This document shows, piece after piece, positions 117 through 30,863 of a stretch of DNA of 32,000 nt. The position numbers were made by a program, and so were the translations under genes. The stretch covers positions 1-32,000 of the forward strand of contig BAAFSQ010000056.1 in the NCBI GenBank assembly GCA_054661495.1. Reading direction: 5' to 3'. The number at the start of each line of letters is the position of its first letter. Positions within the stretch are counted from its first letter, which is position 1. Source of the stretch: Zygophlyctis sp. KS116. Taxonomy: Eukaryota; Fungi; Chytridiomycota. The notes under the pieces were generated by a model, which saw only the letters and a program-made list of their open reading frames with translations, did not search any database and was not told where the DNA came from.

Positions 117-189
117 GGCCGTGTGGCCAAATGGTTAAGGCGTTGGACTTCTAATCCAAAGATTGCGAGTTCGATCCTCGCCTCGGTCT
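117..189 (+). tRNA. tRNA-Arg, anticodon TCT, no intron
   Basis: Cloverleaf read directly: acceptor GGCCGTG/CTCGGTC (one T-T mismatch), D arm TGGCCAAATGGTTAAGGC, anticodon stem TTGGA/TCCAA with loop CTTCTAA, T arm GCGAG-TTCGATC-CTCGC. Confidence 0.95.
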
Positions 190-190
190 A

Positions 191-195
191 TTTTT
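191..195 (+). terminator. RNA polymerase III terminator (T5) of the tRNA gene
   Basis: TTTTT starts 2 nt after the tRNA discriminator base. Confidence 0.7.
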
Positions 196-264
196 GCACA
201 TTTTATGTTTTGGCTCCTTGTAAAAGTAGGACTTGAGCCCTATTGTAATTTTATCCAATCAGAG

Positions 265-1720
265 ATGTTATGGGGAGGTAGATTTACTGGAGCAACAGAT
301 CCACTCATGGAAGCGTTTAATGCATCAATTTCTTTTGATCGCAAGTTGGCACAAGTTGATATTCAGGGATCAGTGGCCTATGTAGAATGTCTTGGAGAGT
401 CTGGATTGATTGATCAAGAAGAATGCAAACAATTGATCACTGGATTAGAGAAAATCGGAATAGAATGGGAAACTGACAAGTTTAAAATAATGGAAAAGGA
501 TGAAGATATCCATTCGGCAAACGAGCGACGGTTGGAAGAATTGATCGGTTCAGTCGCTGGTAAACTTCATACAGGTAGATCTAGAAATGATCAAGTCGCT
601 ACAGATATCAGATTATGGTTGAAAGAAGAAGTGACTGAAATATCTAAAATTCTCAAGGATTTGATAAGTACATGCGTTAAAAGAGCTGAAAGTGAAATTG
701 ATGTATTAATGCCAGGATATACACATTTACAAAAAGCACAGCCGATTAGATGGTCTCATTACTTGATGTCTTTTGCTTGGTTATGGAAATCAGATTTGGA
801 TAGACTCCAAGAATTAAAAAGACGGTGTGATTCATGTCCATTAGGATCTGGTGCACTTGCTGGAAATCCATTTGGAATTGATAGATTTAGTTTAGCAAAA
901 CGCTTAGAATTTTCAAGTGTTATTCCAAATAGTCTTGTAGGAGTGTCTGATCGTGATTTTATAGTTGAATTCCTTTCTTGGGCGTCTCTTACAATGACTC
1001 ATTTAAGTAGATGGGCAGAAGATTTGATTATATACTCAACAGGTGAATTTGGATTTATAAAGTTATCTGATGCATATTCTACTGGATCTTCTCTAATGCC
1101 TCAAAAAAAGAATCCAGACTCTCTGGAATTAATTCGTGTATTTTTTTTAATTTAAATTCAAGGGGAAAACAGGTAGAATATTTGGAAATTTATCTGGGTT
1201 TCTAATGACTTATAAAGGTCTTCCTTCTACGTATAATAAAGATCTTCAAGAAGATAAAGAACCACTTTTTGATTCTGTTGAAACAATTAAAGGTGTATTA
1301 CTAATTTCAACTGGAGTTATTTCTACTTTAAAGGTAATTTTCCAAGTTTTTATAATAGGTCAATCCTTCAAAGATGAAGGCCGCACTTACTTTTGATATG
1401 CTTGCAACTGATCTTGCAGAGTATCTAGTAAGAAAAGGAGTATGAACTTTTCAATATTTAATTATTAGATCCCTTTTAGAGAAACACATCATATTGCTGG
1501 AGCTGCTGTCGCACTTGCAGAGAAATTAGAAATTCAGTTGAATGAGTTAACTCTAGCTCAATTTAAAACTTTACATTCGGCATTTGATCAGGACGTATGT
1601 TCTATCTGGGATTTTGAAATAAGCGTTGAAAAGAGAAATTCTTATGGAGGAACATCAAAGGATCGAGTGCTTGAGCAAGTTGAAGAGTTGAGCAAACGAT
1701 TGGAAAATTCCGCGTTTTAA
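265..1720 (+). CDS. ARG4: Argininosuccinate lyase (4 exons)
   Basis: Motifs [51 protein letters not shown]. Introns 1138-1162, 1334-1358 and 1440-1468 restore LIRGKTGR, STLKVNP and RKGIPFRE. An in-frame ATG at 205 is possible but less likely. Confidence 0.95.
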
Positions 1721-3374: not shown

Positions 3375-4660
<1,286 letters not shown>

Positions 4661-9219: not shown

Positions 9220-10558
9220 ATGAATCGTTTTCTTTCTTCCGCAAACTGTTTAGCTTCTGTATCATCCAGAAAATTACACTTCAGCTCATTCTCAAAATGG
9301 ATGAAGCCGATGCAAGCCAATGCTGATGGATGGGATCAAGCGGTTTTAAATTCGGAGAAGTTGATCAGGATCAAAGATCGTCCAATCATTAATCCGAAAG
9401 AACTTTTAGGACAAGACTTCCAGCTGCTAATTGATAATATATCAAGATTACTGTCTTCTGGCCATCCAGTGCTAAATACGATTTCAAACTATTATTTTTC
9501 TAAAAAAGGAAAACATATCAGGCCATTAATGTATGGAAATGTTTGCTAATAACTAGTGTTCTTTTGATGTCTCAAGCAACTGCATCTAAATCAAATCAAA
9601 AAGTCATTAATATTGATCAAAAGCTTTCTCTTTTAGACTCTATTTCCTTTCTTTCTCCTCAACCTGCAAAGGGAAATCCGCTGATTTTGCCTCAACAGAA
9701 AAGGCTAGCAGAAATTATTGAAATGATTCATACAGCTTCTCTTTTGCACGATGATGTAATTGACGGAGCGAGTACTCGTAGATCGCAGCCATCGGCCAAT
9801 GAAGCATTTGGAAATAAGATGGCGATTCTAGCTGGTGACTTTTTACTAGCAAGAGCATCTGTAGCATTAGCAAGATTAAGAAATGTGGAAGTCTTGGAAA
9901 TAATGGCTACGGTTATATCAAACTTGGTTGAGGGTGAATTTATGCAACTCAAAAATGCAAAGTCTACAAGATCTATATTTAACTTTTGGAAATCAAAAGA
10001 CACTATCTGGAATGATATGTTTGATTATTATATGGAAAAGACATATCTGAAAACGGCAAGTTTGATTGCTAAAAGCTGTGAAGCTAGTGCGATTCTTGGC
10101 GGTTGTGATAGCAAAACAGTGGAATTGTCGTACTTATATGGCAAAAATCTGGGGTTGGCATTTCAGGTAACTCAATATTTGTTGAGGTTAAATAGGTCAT
10201 TGATGATGTATTGGATTTCGTCGTATCATCTGAAGAGTTAGGAAAACCAGCTAATGCTGATCTCAAACTCGGGTTAGCCACCGCACCTGTTATTTATGCT
10301 TCACTAGAATTTCCAGAATTGGTTGAACCTATAAAAAGAAATTTCTCAAATCCTGGGGATGTTGTTTTGGTATGATTACTTTTTTTTATATTGAAGGTAC
10401 GGGAATTAGTAATGAAAAGCAACGGAATTGAAAATGCACGAAATTTAGCCTCTCATTTATGTAAGGAAGCCGCCGAGTCTATTTCTCAGTTACCTCCTAG
10501 TTCCGCCCGAACAGCTTTAATTCAGCTCACTGAGGCGGTTTTGCTCAGGCGCAAATAA
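9220..10558 (+). CDS. COQ1: Polyprenyl (hexaprenyl/decaprenyl) diphosphate synthase
   Basis: GKHIRP, EMIHTASLLHDDVID, KTASL, GLAFQVIDDVLD, GKPANADL and a mitochondrial-targeting-like N-terminus. Introns 9531-9556, 10167-10195 and 10370-10396. Confidence 0.93.
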
Positions 10559-10595
10559 TTCTAAAATAAATGCATTACATATTAATTATTTACAA

Positions 10596-13500
10596 TCAAC
10601 CCAGCTGACTTTTATAAATGTACCCCATGAGCAAAGCGAGTCCAAAAAACGTTCCCGATAAGCAAAGAGTCAGCCATTCACGACCAGTGTTTGGAGGTTC
10701 ATTGTAGACATAAACAATGAACTCTGTGGAGAGGTTGCATGAGCTGCTGTCTAGTAACATGATTTGGAAATGATATAATTCTGAGCCCTTCATATAAGAC
10801 AAACTAAAAAAGGATCTTACCATCCATTTAATACTGTCGCCATTTACAGGATCAATTATAGCCGATAACAGATGAGACTTATTTGAACAGTCTGCGACTG
10901 CTATATTATTAGCATATTTAAAAATATTACATGAAATACAATAGTCGGTTCGGTTATTGACTTCTCTGATTGAATATTGAATACTCACAGGAGTATCTAT
11001 TCCGTTTGAAGATATGAAAAATTGAGGAATATAAGGCGTTAAGTAAGATGTTCTCATAGCCTAAGAGGTCAAATTTTAAAATATACTCTGTCAATGCAGT
11101 CAGAATTTGAAGATTCCATTGAAAGCCGCTGAGCATCACTGCAGCTGCAAGATTTACGATTTGATTTTGCTAAGCATGCTTTGTATGTTCCAGTGGATTT
11201 AGAAATTCCAAATATATCATTATGTCGGGGCTTTTCGGGATCAGCGTTATATACATTATTAGAAATGGGGACAGAGGCCCCAAGATGAGATGGAGGGCGA
11301 TAATTAAACTTCACTTAATAGAAAATTGCATACCGGGAGTTCTTCAACAAGATAGGTTGAAGCTTGAAAATCATATATATGTTCATTAAGAAATGCATGG
11401 GCAGTTAGATTTCGCTCGAAGTGGAGATAACGCGGTGAATTGCAAAGGTTTTGTAAGTAAATTGTCTGTGAAGCGTGTTCGCAGGATAAAGTGCTGAATG
11501 ATGGCTTTAAATTTAAGAGAAAAGTACCCTTGTTGGTTTAAAAGGTATCGACTTACAATAGCGCCATTATCAATGAGAGAAACGTTAACGTCAGATCTCA
11601 TCAATGTTGGATCCCAATACTGTGAAATCTGCTTGTTAAAATAATCCGAATTAGCAAATCTTAGTGTAACTTCCGGAATGATAGAGAAATTTTTTCGTTT
11701 CGTGAATCTGAATGAAGATTGATACTGTTCATTAAATCCATTTCCAACGAATTGGATCGGGGTTTCAACACTGCTGGTTGAAAATATAATGGGGCAATCG
11801 TCTAAATTAATTCTCCATTTCCGCTTCTATTTTCATTGGAAATAAAATTACCAAATTGCTTACAGAAGGATAAGCTCCAGATATGTGAAATGGCAATGTG
11901 AATACAATCCTCCAGGATCCAGGTAAATACGTTCCATTGATAAATGGAACAACAGGAGTAAGAATTAAATATCCATTTTCAAATAGATCAATTATACCCC
12001 ATCCGGCATCAGTTAACAGATATGCTTTTGATAAATCTGGCGCGTTAAAATTAAAATATCATACTATAGGATGGAAGTAAGCCAGGAGAAATATATCCAA
12101 AACTTCCTGATGAATTTGATAACATCGTCAAATTTTGACGAAAGGTAGTTGGATGTTCAGAAAAGGATCGGAAATCATATAATGACCAAGTTCCAACATG
12201 CGCGTCAGCCGTACTAATAGGAGGCAAAATTACCATCCCGGTAGCGTGAGTATAATTTGTGATTTTTGTGATCAAAATTGATCCCAAATGAAGAATAACT
12301 GTTTTTCCAACATCGCTTAAAAGCCAACCATTTTCCGTGAAATTAGAAACAATAAGTTCAACATAATTTGTAGGCTGAGTAGGGAGTCCCTTTTCAATTA
12401 TATCTCTTTTATTTGCGACTCCTAGAATTGTAAGATTTCCAGATGTCGCTGGACTTGCAGTATCTGTTTCCGGTACTAAAAGTGACTTGATGTTCCCATA
12501 CAAAACTTTTCCGTCCTCCGATACATGGCTTATAGAGAATTCTCCTCCATTTTCATGAATGATTTTGTATCCAGAAAGATCTTTCGTCACTAGATTACTC
12601 CCATTGACGTAAAATTGCATAGTATTCTCCCCTGTCCACATAGGAATCAATGTTAGCCCCGAAGATTCATCTAAATTAGCTTTTTCGAATTCAATTGCAA
12701 TTTTCCGTTTCAAAATAAAAGGCACGCCTTTAGAAGGCAAGAGAATCGATCCTGACGATTCAACAAATCCTGCATATGTGAGCGGAATTGAAAATGACCA
12801 AAATGAGCCCGTATTATCAGTCGAGATGGCAATATGCTCTGCTTGATGACTACTGATGCTCCTTATCTCTATCGTATTGGTAGATAACGTACTCCCATAA
12901 AAAATTCGATTAAAGTTTGTTCTGATCATATATGCATCATTAAAAATACCAGAATCAAACTCAACAACATATTCATCGGCTAAAAATAATCCGGATTGTA
13001 TTTCTATGAAAGAAAAGCCACCATCAGAAGAAATCCAAATCTCTTTTCAGTAAGGTGTTAATTACCTCTGAGCCATAAACAAATATATTATTTGTTTTGG
13101 ACTGAAAATCCATACCAGCTACCTTTAAATCAGACGAAAAATTAAATGTCAGCTTTGGAGATCCATTTCCTGCATCTAAAACGACAGATGCATGATCAAT
13201 TAAGCAAGAAGAGTTTCCAGAACATACTATTTGATCATTTCCAAAAAGTGGATTCCCCACCAGATAAACATGCCTCTGATTTATGACATCCCGAAAGGCA
13301 CTAAAGAAAACGCTATTACTTTCAATCCCAATTATATCGCTGACAGCGACACTATTCCAGTTGGGGTTTAAACTGGCACTTAAGTCACCAACTTCTCCGT
13401 AGAGCAGGTGAGATGATGTGTTATAGTAGATTATGTAAACTAAATGCTGGTAGCTATCTAAACAATCAGATTTTCCAAATATTCGCGTAAAATTCATAAA

Positions 13501-14874
13501 GCTGAAATCATTTGTCAATGGAAATATTTGCTTGAAAGCCGTTGAAGATGCAGTATTTGTTTCAAGTATGAATGAACTTGATATGAATAGACCCATTGTT
13601 GTTAAAGTGAATAGATGTGAATTTACAATTATTGAATCCATAATTTGAATGTTTGAACATTCTAATTGATTCAAATTGACACATAAACTGTTATTACTTA
13701 ATCTTACATTTTCAGAAGATCTAGAAAGATCATAGAGCGTAAAATTATCAAAATTTGAACTTGTAATGAGAGACAATGCTCCCATATAGCTGCTATTCCC
13801 ACTTTGAGAACTGACTCCAAATGTAGCTATCCCCTGTTTACGATTACAGTGATCAAATGAAAGTTTTAATTTAAGTGGGACATATTGCGACGTATTGATT
13901 AACATTCCAGAACTTTGCCCATCAGTCTAAAATAACCACAAAAACATCTACCTCATTGTTATCCATATCATATCCAAACTGTAAAGATTGAATCCATGGA
14001 AAAGTCAAGTCAATTGTTTTTGGCGCTATCGTACAAGATTGTATACTAGCCCCATTTCCCTCTATGACCCCAATCACTGGCCAAGAACTATTGAAATATT
14101 TGAAAGAAAGTTCTATTTTCCATCTATGAGATTCATACTATAATTATAAAGTGCATATTACCGTAAAATTAGATGATTGAAAATGAAAATGATGCGTTCC
14201 ATTCGATAATCCTAGTTTTGGAGCTCCGCCAATTGAAGAAAACATATCAGTTAGTAAAGTTTGAGATGTGGCGTCAGCAACATCTAATACCGATATCCAA
14301 AGAACAACATTGCCTCCACCATAAGGTTTTAGGTGTGTCGGAATAGTAGAACTTTCAGAATTCCAATCCATGGATATATTATATTCATAGCAATCTAAAC
14401 TTTATCTTAAATTTAGTTACGCTTCCTAGGTAAAACTATGAGATTAATTCCAACGATTGGAGCAGGGTATCCTAATCTTTAGTCAACAATCACTTACCTC
14501 CTTTTGTTACCCCATAAAAAATAGAACCATAGCTGCTAAATGGTTGATCATTGATTGATAATGATACATCATACTTTCCAGCTGATAACACTCTAGTTAC
14601 GCGAGAATTCCCTATAGTTTGAATGACTAGCGCTCCAATTTCAAACTTGAAATAGTAGGAAGAGGATGCATTCAGCGTCGGCAAGTATGAAGAGCTTGCA
14701 TCAAATATTATAGCTGGTTTTAAGTCTAAATGAATTACATTGTCCTTCGTAAAACGCATCATACTCACCAAAAACGTTAAGTCTCGGTAATGGATAATTT
14801 GTTCCATTCAATGTACCTAGGGAGGAAGCATGCCTAATTATCAAAACGCTCAGAATAAAAAAGGTAAACATCAT
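10596..14874 (-). CDS. CATSPERB: CatSper channel auxiliary subunit beta-like protein (large single-pass, signal-peptide protein, more than 10 tiny introns)
   Basis: Spliced product has LPFNYRPPSHLGASVPISNNVYNADPEKP...SKSTGTYKAC...CSCS...SDCIDR, then GSELYHF...CNLSTEFIVYV and a C-terminal TM helix. These match the CATSPERB C-terminal region as I recall it. Also YGSE|IWISSDGG and the signal-like MMFTFFILSVLII. The 5' exon structure is uncertain. Confidence 0.82.
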
Positions 14875-14959
14875 CCAGTATCGGTCGGTAAATTATTGAA
14901 AACTCCATCAGTTAGTTATTGGCACACTTGACCTACATTAAAAGCTTCCTGATTATTTG

Positions 14960-15265
14960 ATGGATGCATCACTAGTTTTCATTGATTCTCCAGAAAGAGG
15001 AACAGTTTGCATTATTTGTCATGTGCTTATTCAAGACAAAACACCTTCTAGTAAAGCTCGCCATTTAAGAACCAAGATGCATCAGAATTCAGTAAGATTA
15101 GCATTGGCACAGAGTTCAAAAGATTTATCAAAATTTGAGAATCAAGATGGCAAACAAGAGAAAAAGTCGGCAAGTGATTTAGCCAGCAATGGAGATTCTG
15201 AGAATTCTATGATTTTTTCACATTATATCAAAGACTTTGACTTTAGTAAGAGCCATGAGGAATAG
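14960..15265 (+). CDS. Small U1/matrin-type C2H2 zinc-finger protein
   Basis: CIICHVLIQDKTPSSKARHLRTKMH pattern (CxxC...HxxxxxH). Confidence 0.55.
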   Translation: MDASLVFIDSPERGTVCIICHVLIQDKTPSSKARHLRTKMHQNSVRLALAQSSKDLSKFENQDGKQEKKSASDLASNGDSENSMIFSHYIKDFDFSKSHEE

Positions 15266-16416: not shown

Positions 16417-16476
16417 CTTTTGGTTGAAAGAAAACAAATAAACCCCTCTACACTGTTTGGCCATCAACGGCACAAG

Positions 16477-17712
16477 ATGCACAATAATATTCAACAACTC
16501 ATTCTTAATACCTTTAATACAATCGGTAAATCAGGAAAGCCGGCTAAAGATCAGTTTACAGTGCTGGCAGGATTAGTCGTCGGAGATCAAGTAGTTGCAT
16601 TGGGAACTGGACTAAGTTGTAGAAATCATTTACAATTAAGTGATCAAGGGGATATTGTTAATGATTGTCATGCGGAAGTATTATGTATTAGATCTTTTAG
16701 AGCATTCCTATATCATCAAATGTTTGCAGCAATCAAGTCGGAAAATAGCATTCTAGAGTGGAATCCATCTGCGGCTTATCCATTCAGACTTGTAAAAGGC
16801 TTAGAATTGGATCTTTATATATCTCAGGCTCCTTGTGGAGATGCATCAATGGATATTTTAGAAGATCGCCAGTCTGAACAAGAGATATTAGACAATAGAA
16901 ATAATGTATTAAATGCTCAAAATATGAATAATTCAGTCAATCAATTACTACCAAATGAAAATATTAGTGGAATAGTTCATAGAGGAAGAATGGATTATTC
17001 AATAAGGGGTGTTGCACGTACAAAACCAGGAAGAATAGATTCAATTCCTACTTTAAGTATGTCATGTAGTGATAAAATTCTATTATGGAGTATGATTGGT
17101 GTATCTGGGGCTTTATTATCTCTACTAATAGAACCGATTTATATTTCTTCAATAACTGTTGCTGATGGAGTTATAGAGGATTTGGAAGACTCATTTAGGT
17201 CTAGAAGAGTAAATATATTCACTAGTTATAATCACAAAAAGAGAAAAATCGATGATGACTTTGGAGAAAGATCACCATTTATAGAATATTTTAAATCTGG
17301 GATTCCTAAAATCTATTCATGTACGCAAGAATTCAAATTTAGTTGGTCACAATCTCAGTCTAGTCCATGTCTTTCATCTATAATTTGGAATCCAATTGAT
17401 GGATCACAGGTTCTTGATGTTCGAGGAATGAAATTAGGAACATCTAAAAAAAATTCTAAAAAAGTCTTTTCATTTGTTTGTAATCTGGAACTTTTTACTA
17501 GATTCTCTAAACTAATTGCACTTTTAAGTCAAGAGGAATATCTCGGAAAGTCAGACTTTAATTTACTCAATCTAAATCAAAAAGATTGTGAATCATATTT
17601 GGATTTTAAAATTCAAAATTCAAAATATCAAAAAGCAAAAGACATTGCAGTAAAGCAAGGAGTCAAAGGTTGGATACGTAAGAACCCTAAATGGACCGAC
17701 TTTAAGATCTGA
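16477..17712 (+). CDS. TAD1: tRNA-specific adenosine deaminase 1 (ADAT1/Tad1; A37 to I37)
   Basis: DCHAEV, SQAPCGDAS, RTKPGR, SMSCSDK; no dsRNA-binding domains seen. In-frame tiny introns cannot be excluded. Confidence 0.88.
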   Translation: MHNNIQQLILNTFNTIGKSGKPAKDQFTVLAGLVVGDQVVALGTGLSCRNHLQLSDQGDIVNDCHAEVLCIRSFRAFLYHQMFAAIKSENSILEWNPSAAYPFRLVKGLELDLYISQAPCGDASMDILEDRQSEQEILDNRNNVLNAQNMNNSVNQLLPNENISGIVHRGRMDYSIRGVARTKPGRIDSIPTLSMSCSDKILLWSMIGVSGALLSLLIEPIYISSITVADGVIEDLEDSFRSRRVNIFTSYNHKKRKIDDDFGERSPFIEYFKSGIPKIYSCTQEFKFSWSQSQSSPCLSSIIWNPIDGSQVLDVRGMKLGTSKKNSKKVFSFVCNLELFTRFSKLIALLSQEEYLGKSDFNLLNLNQKDCESYLDFKIQNSKYQKAKDIAVKQGVKGWIRKNPKWTDFKI

Positions 17713-18904: not shown

Positions 18905-19003
18905 ATTTCATATGGTGTCATATCAAAATATTTTTTTTCTAATGCAATCATGTATGTACATGGTTATAGTTTGCTGAGAGTAAGACAAGAATACGCGCTT
19001 TTC

Positions 19004-20698
19004 ATGAAATCCACCGTATTAGAAGAGAATCTGGACGATAATTACGAACCGACAACCTTGGAAATACATGAATATGCTAGATTTCTAGGAATGGATCCAG
19101 ACGAAGATAAAGACTTGCTATGGATAGCCAAAGAGTCTCTTAAAGCTCCACTGCCAGAGAACTGGAAGCCTTGTCAGACTGACGAAGGAGACATTTATTA
19201 CTTTAATTTTAAAAGTGGAGAGAGTTTGTGGGATCATCCTTGTGATAATCACTACAGAGAACTCTTTAAAAGAGAAAAGACTAAAAACACTAAAAATGAA
19301 ACAATCCAAGAGTCTAAAGGAGTCACTAAAATCTCAAATTCTCCTCTTGCTCCAATAATCTCAAATAGGAATATTTCAAATGATTCTCAAAGGAAAACTG
19401 GAGAATCTCTTCCTGCTATTACTAGTCTTCAACTAAAGGATTTGAATCAAGAAGACAAGAAACTTGCAGGACTCCTTAAATTGAAATCAAATGCTAGTAT
19501 TTCTGCACTTTCTCCAATTAAAGTTGGACAAGGAGAGGAGATGAATCAAGGAAATTTAGGAAGAGAGTTGGAAGAGGTTAAGCTGGAAAATTCACTAGAA
19601 ATTCAAAAAATTAAAGATAAACATTTAGAGGCTAAAAGGGAATTAGAGCTGTTGCAGGAAAAGGAATTAAAGAGTCTCGAGAAAGATTTAGAAATGCGAA
19701 AACTAGAGATTAAAGAGAAATTAGGAAAAGAATATCTTGATTATGATTTAGAAAAGGAGAAAAATAAGCTGTTGGATAGTCAAGAATGTGAATTAAAGAG
19801 ATTTGAAAGGGATTTGAAAGAAAAATTAGAGACTGAAAGAAAGAAACTGCTTTTAGAGTTTGAAAGAGAATTAGAGGAAAAACTGGAATTTGAAAAAAGA
19901 GAATTAAAAGAAAGATTTGAGACAGAGAAGGAACTAGTATTAAAAGAAAAATTGGAGTCTGAAAGAAAAGACTATGAACTAGTATTAAAAGAAAAATTTG
20001 AAACAGAAAGAAAAGACTATGAACGAGAATTAAAAGAAAAATTGGAGTCAGAAAAAAAGAAACTACTTTTAGATTATGAAAATGCAGTTCAGCATGAATC
20101 ACATAAACTAAAAGAGGCTGAAATTCATGTCAGAAATACAATCAATGAATCTCCAAAGACCTCAATAACCGACACTTTAGAGTTTAAAAATCAACAATTT
20201 CCACAAACCAATAATTTTGGTAAATGTAGATTTTTAATTTAACTAGACCAACTTCTTTACAATTGTAATCAGATTTTAGACAATCAGACAATACCATTTA
20301 CAGATTTAACTGAATTGTCACAAAAGAAAAGTGATGATGATGATTTTATAGCGCAACTAAAAATGAAATTATCTAATTATACTAGTTACGCTTCTAAATC
20401 TTTGGGTAACAATACTTCAAAGTCTCCTAAAGATGCTGAAACTCAACAAGTTGAAAACAAAAATCACGCAACCAAGATATCCCTAATTGAAAGCAACGAT
20501 TCGGCTATTTTAGACTATCTAAAGAAAGTAAAGGAAAGAAACTTTTTAGATGCATCGACCTTATCTCGGTATGTGCAGTCGATTAACTTTAGTCATGTCT
20601 TACCCGATCAAATCAGGAAAAAGACTGCTTACATTTCCTCAAGATCAAAATGGATGGCTGAAATTCAACACCAAGAAGAATATTTAAGAAAGTTTTAA
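19004..20698 (+). CDS. CEP164: Centrosomal/basal-body distal appendage protein CEP164-like (WW domain plus coiled coil)
   Basis: VLEE..DDNYEPT..EIHEYARFLGMDP..DKDLLWIAKESLKAPLPENWKPC...IYYFNF..GESLWDHPCD is the characteristic CEP164 N-terminus. Intron 20220-20246. Confidence 0.88.
19931..20062 (+). repeat. 45-bp tandem repeat (about 3 copies, with degenerate copies upstream) in the CEP164 coiled coil
   Basis: GAACTAGTATTAAAAGAAAAATTGGAGTCTGAAAGAAAAGACTAT-like units encoding ELVLKEKLESERKDY. Confidence 0.85.
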
Positions 20699-29908: not shown

Positions 29909-30863
29909 ATTACTAGATTTGGCATTATATTATTAATTTAATCAAGTAATGACAATCCGTTCTATCTGAGAATTTAAGCCACCTTTTCAAGTAAATCACA
30001 TGGAGTAAATCCGATCCGGAACCTGACATCGAAAAGCCATGCGCTTGTCGTTTGAATGATCATGCCCACCTCGGGCTTAAATTTGCTTTAATAATGAAAT
30101 TCTTGACTCTTGTATGTTTGATTCCCCATATTTTGGCTTATGGTAACAAATTACGAAAGGCGCTTCCGAAAACTGTTCCGTTAAAACATGATGTTGAATC
30201 CCTAGATTTCCAATCCTATTGGGATGAATATGTTGCGGAAAAAAGCCAGGATTTCCATAATTCCGGTCCGGTGAAAGCAGATTTTAAGAACGGCGTGTTT
30301 GATGAAACATTCATGATGGAAAACGTGCCTAAAGACAATGCTGGCAAGACTAGAAATTCTGAACCAAAAACGTTTCTAGACCAAGAAGATGTTGTTGGTC
30401 CTGCTGTCCCACCATCAATGCAAACTGCTGAAGGATCGCTGCAATTGATAAAATCAAAGAATTTCCATGATCAAATGCGCAATAGATTGTCTAATGATGC
30501 CCTTTTGAGTATTGATGCAGGTAAACTTTTCTACATATTGACTTTAGACGACTACTCAGAAGAATTCGCTGATATCCCAACTTTAAAAGTTACTGTCCCA
30601 CTTTCTAGTTATGGATTTAGATATGGTGCATTCCCGAAACAAGAGATTACGTATCAGATGGGCACAAGAGTTCTTACAGATGATGTGGCAATCTATATTA
30701 TATACTATGGGGGCTGGTCTCAACAACAAAAAGATATTTTGAATGAATTTACGGCATCGTTAGGGGACTCATGTGCGTTTATATAAATTTAAAGATTAGC
30801 TTGGTGGAACATTATGCGAAAATATTACTCTCAAAAGGATATTAACTCTGAAAAAGTTTATGT
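29004..30863 (+). repeat. 240-bp identical direct repeat (29004-29243 and 30624-30863) between Phi-1 copies 1 and 2
   Basis: Base-for-base identity at offset 1620, including a 27-nt intron. Confidence 0.9.

Follow-up and report, generated by a model that had tools for sequence, protein, structure and literature searches.

A CATSPERB homologue and candidate CatSper partner genes in a freshwater zoosporic fungus

INTRODUCTION

Does a zoosporic fungus encode CATSPERB, the auxiliary beta subunit of the flagellar Ca2+ channel CatSper, and, if so, does its genome encode partners with which that subunit could work? The question is raised by a gene at positions 10596-14874 of contig BAAFSQ010000056.1 (assembly GCA_054661495.1, deposited as Zygophlyctis sp. 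KS116), within a stretch of 32,000 nucleotides (nt; positions 1 to 32,000 of the contig) that we refer to as the window. An initial annotation, made from the sequence alone, read the gene as a homologue of CATSPERB and proposed that the organism may keep a fuller CatSper complex.

CatSper genes are present in Allomyces according to the passage of 10.1101/230292 that cites Cai and Clapham (2012), and Allomyces sexual stages express homologues of CATSPERB, CATSPERG, and CATSPERD (10.1101/230292). According to reviews, the complex goes back to an ancestor shared by apusozoans, animals, and fungi (PMC7935092). A 2026 study lists CATSPER1-4, B, D/E, G, and T, EFCB9, and TMEM249 among orthogroups specific to flagellated fungi and not retained universally (PMC13358043). 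Of the auxiliary subunits, epsilon is as anciently distributed as beta and gamma, and delta arose later (Chung et al. 2017, eLife, PMC5362262). The rarity of CatSper in fungi was overstated in the initial annotation: homologues occur in many zoosporic fungi, some of them already named, and the orthogroup has been tabulated (PMC13358043). Because earlier work already documents CatSper, together with its beta, gamma, and delta/epsilon subunits, in Allomyces and flagellated fungi (10.1101/230292; PMC5362262; PMC13358043), the gene described here leaves the general picture unchanged.

RESULTS

Structure of the gene and of the encoded protein

The minus strand from 14874 to 10596 is a run of stop-free pieces, with the reading frame changing between pieces. 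We constructed a gene model by dynamic programming, maximising coding length, allowing GT-AG introns only, and penalising long introns. The model comprises 12 exons and 11 GT-AG introns of 19-28 nt, with donors that are mostly GTAA or GTAT, and encodes approximately 1333 codons (Table 1). The ATG at 14874 is the first one past an in-frame stop, and the TGA occupies 10598-10596, so that the gene limits given in the initial annotation are exact; its claim that the fragments splice into one long protein also holds, but its count of eight or so fragments falls short of the 12 exons. Approximately 4 kb of coding sequence is read through without an internal stop or frameshift. A gene model with the fewest introns was dropped, having implausible introns of 60-130 nt and poor donors.

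Three places in the model admit a second option. Specifically, the intron after exon 1 measures 25 nt (14738-14714) or, if its donor is the GTGAGT at 14768, 43 nt; micro-exon 3 can be replaced by one 103-nt intron (14497-14395); and exon 5 ends at either 13946 (19-nt intron) or 13952 (25-nt intron with a GTAGAT donor). The downstream frame is the same under every option. The joined coding sequence, assembled by scripts, was used only for exon coordinates, length, hydropathy, and the effects of single-nucleotide polymorphisms (SNPs); homology searches, family scans, and folding were run exon by exon.

The encoded protein is a type-I single-pass membrane glycoprotein of secreted type, with a signal-like N-terminus, a big ectodomain, a C-terminal helix, and a short tail. 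Only two 19-residue windows are hydrophobic, residues 1-19 and 1309-1327, in agreement with the signal peptide and single transmembrane segment proposed initially; hydropathy is the sole basis of the call of a signal-like N-terminus. The protein contains 29 N-x-S/T sequons and 20 cysteines, and its tail extends 5 residues beyond the membrane helix. The motifs by which the gene was first recognised are present on the minus strand: the stop-free piece 11314-11072 holds NYRPPS...YNADP.KP and the Cys cluster that closes with SDC, and the stop-free piece 11060-10599 holds GSELYHF...CNL..EF.VYV.

Assignment to the CATSPERB family

Profile searches place the C-terminal domain in the CATSPERB family. 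The Pfam family PF15149 (CATSPERB_C; cut-off 27 bits) scores 96.4 bits (E 2.4e-27) on the 81-residue stop-free piece with exon 11 and reaches 30.4 bits for exon 12, and a six-frame search of the genome finds it at a single locus in the assembly, this gene. PF22830 (CATSPERB_head; cut-off 27 bits) scores 27.0 bits on the open reading frame (ORF) piece with exon 7 and 26.7 bits on the exact exon, which is borderline by sequence, and CATSPERB_1st scores a sub-threshold 15.4 bits on exon 4. The paralogue profile CATSPERD-E_C scores 19.2 bits on the stem and membrane-helix region, under its cut-off of 27.4 bits. No Pfam family was found in exon 6.

Sequence searches against solved structures point to the same subunit. 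In phmmer searches of all PDB sequences, exon 11 matches only mouse CATSPERB (9ubw_E and 7eeb_E, E 2.7e-18), with 76 residues aligned to residues 848-923, and exon 12 matches only the same two chains (E 0.011), at residues 999-1059, comprising the stem strand and the membrane helix. In these searches neither exon matches a chain of gamma, delta, or epsilon. The homology that had been proposed from motifs is thereby confirmed far past chance, and the gene appears nearer to beta than to the gamma, delta, and epsilon paralogues.

A 292-residue ORF piece comprising most of exon 7 has zero phmmer matches in the PDB, and a predicted fold was therefore needed to tie exon 7 to CATSPERB. We aligned exon 7 to the corresponding segments of 26 homologues and folded it with AlphaFold2 (AF2), obtaining a model with a predicted local distance difference test (pLDDT) score of 81.3. 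Foldseek ranks 9ubw_E first (E 6e-12) and 7eeb_E second (E 2e-11), both with probability 1.00, and the next entry follows at 6e-4. VIA-align yields a Z score of 17.8 over 248 residues of 7eeb_E 430-707, with the next entry at 10.1. No other CatSper subunit is present among the Foldseek and VIA matches of the model. The comparison with the mouse CatSpermasome that the initial annotation had suggested thus favours its reading. In the AF2 model, which spans exon 7 alone, residues 1-125 form propeller blades, and the structure matches indicate that exon 7 corresponds to the end of the propeller followed by the beta-specific head. An ESM Atlas feature search with the 292-residue piece returned noise (scores ≤0.81, viral and bacterial clusters).

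Homologues in zoosporic fungi and other eukaryotes

A phmmer search of 1.84 billion cluster representatives with exon 11 reveals 154 proteins at E ≤0.001, many of which have 1100-1400 residues and carry the motif approximately 200 residues before the C-terminus. The relatives include chytrids (Chytridiales sp. JEL0842, Polyrhizophydium stewartii, Chytriomyces hyalinus, Podochytrium, and Gorgonomyces), other fungi (Gonapodya; the blastoclads Allomyces, with three species, Blastocladiella, and Sorochytrium; and Rozella allomycis), and non-fungal organisms (the ichthyosporean Chromosphaera, the malawimonad Gefionella, Diphylleia, and animals, e.g. Owenia). CATSPERB homologues are present in at least 10 zoosporic fungi. 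Two NCBI fungal entries, one of them in RefSeq (XP_052968924), are titled 'cation channel sperm-associated protein subunit beta protein family-domain-containing', and the UniRef names of the Allomyces and Rozella proteins refer to the CATSPERB C-terminal domain.

Exon-by-exon blastp searches show that exon order is kept along the fungal homologues, starting close to the signal peptide and running as far as the membrane helix, with exon 9 the sole exon having no homologue match. In particular, the exons cover, in order, residues 116-193, 205-262, 265-569, 568-897, 924-981, and 1109-1182 of the Polyrhizophydium stewartii protein P0124. This order validates the gene model as a whole and establishes full-length orthology. 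The closest full-length relatives are chytrid proteins, with 58-59% identity in the core, as compared with 47-50% for animals; the best match anywhere is a 125-residue metagenomic fragment with 69% identity.

Homology to CATSPERB is thus supported by profiles, by sequence searches against solved structures, by the predicted fold, and by colinearity with fungal homologues. We consider it likely that the gene, from a freshwater, zoosporic, chytrid-like fungus, is an orthologue of CATSPERB and encodes the auxiliary beta subunit of the flagellar Ca2+ channel CatSper.

Full-length CATSPERB-like proteins of approximately 1290-1384 residues also occur in Gefionella okellyi (P0185), Diphylleia rotans (P0137), and Chromosphaera perkinsii (P0164). 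The occurrences in the malawimonad Gefionella and in Diphylleia, a CRuMs flagellate, come from transcriptomes, in which contamination is possible, and represent a wider spread than the origin in Apusozoa, animals, and fungi that a 2021 review gives.

Candidate partner subunits in the same genome

Six-frame Pfam profile searches of the same assembly detect four further auxiliary subunits above Pfam cut-offs: CATSPERG, a subunit of delta/epsilon type, CatSper-tau, and TMEM249 (CatSper-theta). The delta/epsilon-type gene is more likely to encode epsilon than delta, because epsilon, like beta and gamma, is anciently distributed and delta came later (PMC5362262).

The Ion_trans profile marks eight places on seven contigs. 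The loci searched against the PDB were L003, L004, L005, L006, L007, and L010, and C221 (L008) was left out. Four of the searched loci, on contigs C8, C21, C2, and C217, are single-repeat genes that would fit a CatSper1-4 set. The C2 locus yields only CatSper2 in the PDB search, and the metagenomic relatives of the C8 locus, at 56-57% identity, carry the automatic name CatSper1. The presence of gamma, delta/epsilon-type, tau, TMEM249, and pore candidates makes a CatSpermasome-like complex plausible in this fungus; the proposal of a fuller complex in the initial annotation gains support from these auxiliary genes, from a pore gene specific to CatSper2, and from three more single-repeat Ion_trans genes.

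Two Ion_trans loci were set aside. L007 (C1018), an ORF encoding only a voltage sensor, was rejected as a CatSper pore, being Hv1-like; it sits on a contig of 1.3 kb, which offers no gene context. In human sperm, the proton channel Hv1 acts upstream of CatSper by alkalinising the cell. The locus that matches Ion_trans most weakly, L010 (C229), has no match in the PDB and was left out of the pore count.

Points against the assignment and alternative readings

Several observations weigh against the gene being a working CATSPERB orthologue with a full set of partners. Neither the N-terminal third nor exon 9 is matched at family level by Pfam, and intron 1, micro-exon 3, and intron 5 each admit two splice choices. 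The pore candidates on C8, C21, and C217 are assigned purely by phmmer rank, and NaChBac-type channels and Cav/Nav repeats score equal or higher. Searches of the genome with profiles of the gamma (PF15064), delta (PF15020), and epsilon (PF22844) propellers detect nothing; since the gamma and delta/epsilon genes show their C-terminal domains, we read this silence as divergence, not absence, and the profiles do not separate delta from epsilon. The one RNA run that contains part of the stretch, a lake metatranscriptome, contributes two short contigs on the gene, both unspliced; with no splice joint in either, they possibly represent carried-over DNA, so that transcription is hinted at only and the splice model lacks RNA support. 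The sample of between-lake SNPs (n = 13) is too small to show purifying selection.

The alternative that survives best is that the gene is an orthologue of CATSPERB whose product has ceased to work with a CatSper pore and, as an orphan ectodomain protein, has taken on another role, such as adhesion or sensing at the surface of the zoospore or thallus. Such a protein would be in keeping with the finding that only one of the four pore candidates, on C2, is CatSper-specific by PDB search, the other three being ambiguous. However, the genome keeps gamma, delta/epsilon-type, tau, and TMEM249 genes together with exactly four single-repeat Ion_trans candidates; the beta, gamma, and epsilon genes are gained and lost together across lineages, and in mouse sperm the subunits depend strictly on one another for protein expression (Chung et al., PMC5362262); and conservation in this protein is highest in the stem and the membrane helix, which in mouse make contact with the pore. 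We regard repurposing as unlikely.

A decaying or unexpressed relic, looking intact merely owing to a maximum-coding model fit, is more improbable still. The model does maximise coding length, homologues support neither exon 9 nor the micro-exon, and the RNA contigs show no splice joints. Against decay, approximately 4 kb is free of stops and frameshifts with introns that are all GT-AG and 19-28 nt long, the exons follow the order of full-length homologues all the way from the signal peptide to the membrane helix, and the conserved cysteines and motifs are retained. Of the 13 SNPs, 3 fall in the approximately 280 nt of introns, 5 are synonymous, and 5 are non-synonymous, so that half of the coding SNPs are synonymous. 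The gene is intact.

Host organism and neighbouring genes

The assembly comprises 12.7 Mb in 1175 contigs. The stretch that carries the gene recurs in numerous metagenomes of freshwater, lakes, rivers, and estuaries across a dozen studies, pointing to an uncultured, widespread aquatic organism. The neighbouring ARG4 gene is 67-68% identical to those of Spizellomyces, Borealophlyctis, and Batrachochytrium, and its best named matches include chytrids beside other early-diverging fungi. Together with the chytrid top matches of the CATSPERB-like gene, the ARG4 identities suggest that the host is a zoosporic fungus, probably a chytrid, having no close sequenced relative. A contaminating animal or protist gene binned into the assembly, as might be feared for a freshwater assembly of metagenome or single-cell type in 1175 contigs, is very hard to credit, given a 32-kb contig with fungal-type housekeeping genes on both sides and the same 33-37% G+C content and tiny introns throughout, full-length relatives that are closest in chytrids (58-59% core identity vs 47-50% in animals), and a 10,973-base contig from an independent study that spans the whole 4.5-kb stretch with the gene at 7 differences.

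The neighbours of the CATSPERB-like gene in the window are ordinary housekeeping or secreted genes, and packing is tight: 37 nt separate the CATSPERB stop from the end of a convergent polyprenyl-synthase-like gene (10558-10596), and a divergent upstream gene begins approximately 85 nt from the ATG (14874-14960). The initial annotation had also noted CEP164 approximately 4 kb away, and a CEP164 N-terminal, WW-containing domain is indeed found there (Table 1). CEP164 is a basal-body distal-appendage protein, and its presence is in keeping with a flagellum.

Table 1. Coordinates of the CATSPERB-like gene, candidate CatSper partner genes, and neighbouring genes (positions given with no contig refer to the window; other contigs belong to the same assembly)
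Feature	Position	Strand	Evidence
Exon 1, start codon and signal-like segment (residues 1-19, ~14874-14818)	14739..14874	-	Gene model, hydropathy
Exon 2, first N-terminal domain region	14498..14713	-	Gene model; weak blastp to Chytridiales sp. homologue residues 9-104
Exon 3, possible 51-nt micro-exon	14421..14471	-	Gene model
Exon 4	14162..14394	-	Weak CATSPERB_1st (~14272-14168); blastp to Gonapodya and Polyrhizophydium homologues
Exon 5	13946..14137	-	Gene model; blastp to fungal homologues
Exon 6 (287 aa), presumed first part of beta-propeller	13066..13926	-	blastp to fungal homologues, E down to 5e-22, colinear
Exon 7 (325 aa), predicted last propeller blades and beta-specific head (Pfam head ~12365-12165)	12065..13040	-	Pfam, AF2, Foldseek, VIA
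Exon 8	11852..12036	-	Gene model; blastp to homologues directly after head region
Exon 9, variable linker or immunoglobulin (Ig)-like region; shakiest part of model	11557..11826	-	Gene model
Exon 10	11334..11528	-	blastp; aligns immediately upstream of conserved C-terminal motif in homologues
Exon 11, most conserved CATSPERB_C core (NYRPPS / YNADP / Cys cluster)	11087..11308	-	Pfam, phmmer
Exon 12, remaining CATSPERB_C (stem), membrane helix (~10673-10617), 5-residue tail, TGA	10596..11060	-	Pfam, phmmer, hydropathy
CATSPERG	C1:40467-41437	+	PF22851 (CATSPERG_Ig-like) 39.9 bits, PF22846 (CATSPERG_C) 78.7 bits
Delta/epsilon-type subunit	C15:17903-18409	+	PF22850 (CATSPERD-E_C) 53.2 bits
CatSper-tau	C193:9150-9509	+	PF15729 (CTSRT) 29.7 bits
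TMEM249 (CatSper-theta)	C627:3081-3251	-	PF15158 44.9 bits
Pore candidate L003	C8		Best CatSper chain CatSper1, 80.7 bits; bacterial single-repeat channels level
Pore candidate L004	C21		Best CatSper chain in PDB CatSper3
Pore candidate L005	C2		PDB search, CatSper2 only
Pore candidate L006; gene split into short exon pieces	C217		CatSper1 and CatSper4 about equal
L007, voltage-sensor-only ORF, Hv1-like	C1018:139-735	+	PDB single-domain matches 3wkv (1.6e-8) and 5oqk (4e-6)
Argininosuccinate lyase	163-1155	+	Lyase_1, E 1e-93
DAHP synthase	3917-4633	-
ADAT1-type adenosine deaminase	16420-17712	+	A_deamin, E 7e-59
CEP164 N-terminal (WW-containing) domain	18950-20242	+	E 9.7e-33 to human 7nwj, 7o06
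PHI-1/EXORDIUM-like protein	30052-30786	+

DISCUSSION

Our analysis adds a well-supported CATSPERB and a near-complete partner set from a freshwater chytrid. The find is a correct identification of CATSPERB in another chytrid, and its novelty is low. Its use lies in annotating this genome, where most introns are only approximately 24-28 nt and gene callers therefore easily miss genes, and in comparing the Ca2+ control of flagellar steering outside animals.

Past the domain architecture and the co-occurrence of genes, we infer what follows, including the role in zoospore steering. In the mouse CatSpermasome structure (7EEB), the CATSPERB membrane helix reportedly packs on the voltage-sensor domain of CatSper4. 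By analogy, the membrane helix of the fungal beta subunit may pack on the voltage-sensor domain of one pore subunit, and its ectodomain, together with gamma and the delta/epsilon-type subunit, may build an extracellular canopy that would be needed for the assembly and stability of a heterotetrameric pore. The complex would sit in the zoospore flagellar membrane and would convert cues of pH, voltage, or chemistry into an influx of Ca2+; this influx would alter the flagellar waveform and lead to zoospore turning or chemotaxis.

More tentatively, and with rather more doubt than confidence, we raise the possibility that the near-complete CatSpermasome (four pore genes, beta, gamma, delta/epsilon-type, tau, and theta) and the Hv1-like gene constitute a full sperm-type Ca2+/pH module that predates animals, possibly reaching back to the opisthokont-apusomonad ancestor, and that still steers the zoospores of lake fungi. 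If this is true, the set in this widespread lake chytrid, whose tiny-intron genome is extremely compact, and the homologues in Gefionella and Diphylleia would imply that the module, including subunits only recently described in mammals, is older than animals.

Among known proteins, CATSPERG, CATSPERD, and CATSPERE resemble the protein described here in overall plan (signal peptide, ectodomain with a propeller, stem, and single membrane helix), but the gamma and delta/epsilon signatures sit at separate loci of the same genome. The CATSPERB proteins of zoosporic fungi, namely KAJ3417295 (Chytridiales sp. JEL0842), KAJ3418666 (Polyrhizophydium stewartii), KAJ3235481 (Chytriomyces hyalinus), AMAG_07910 (Allomyces macrogynus), O9G_003556 (Rozella allomycis), and XP_052968924, are colinear over their full length (1135-1379 residues), with 55-59% identity in the core and 27-33% in exons 6 and 7, although no close species is among those sequenced. 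Mouse CATSPERB (chain E of 7EEB and 9UBW) differs in length (1065-1109 residues vs approximately 1333 here), in phmmer similarity that is confined to the C-terminal domain, with a weak N-terminal Pfam match (15 bits), and in its setting, a sperm cell as opposed to a fungal zoospore host whose gene has introns of 19-28 nt. The mouse protein nevertheless has the same C-terminal stem domain with the NYRPPS, YNADP, and Cys-cluster motifs, the same GSELxHF stem strand followed by a single membrane helix and a short tail, and, over residues 430-707, a propeller-plus-head fold that the exon 7 model is predicted to match.

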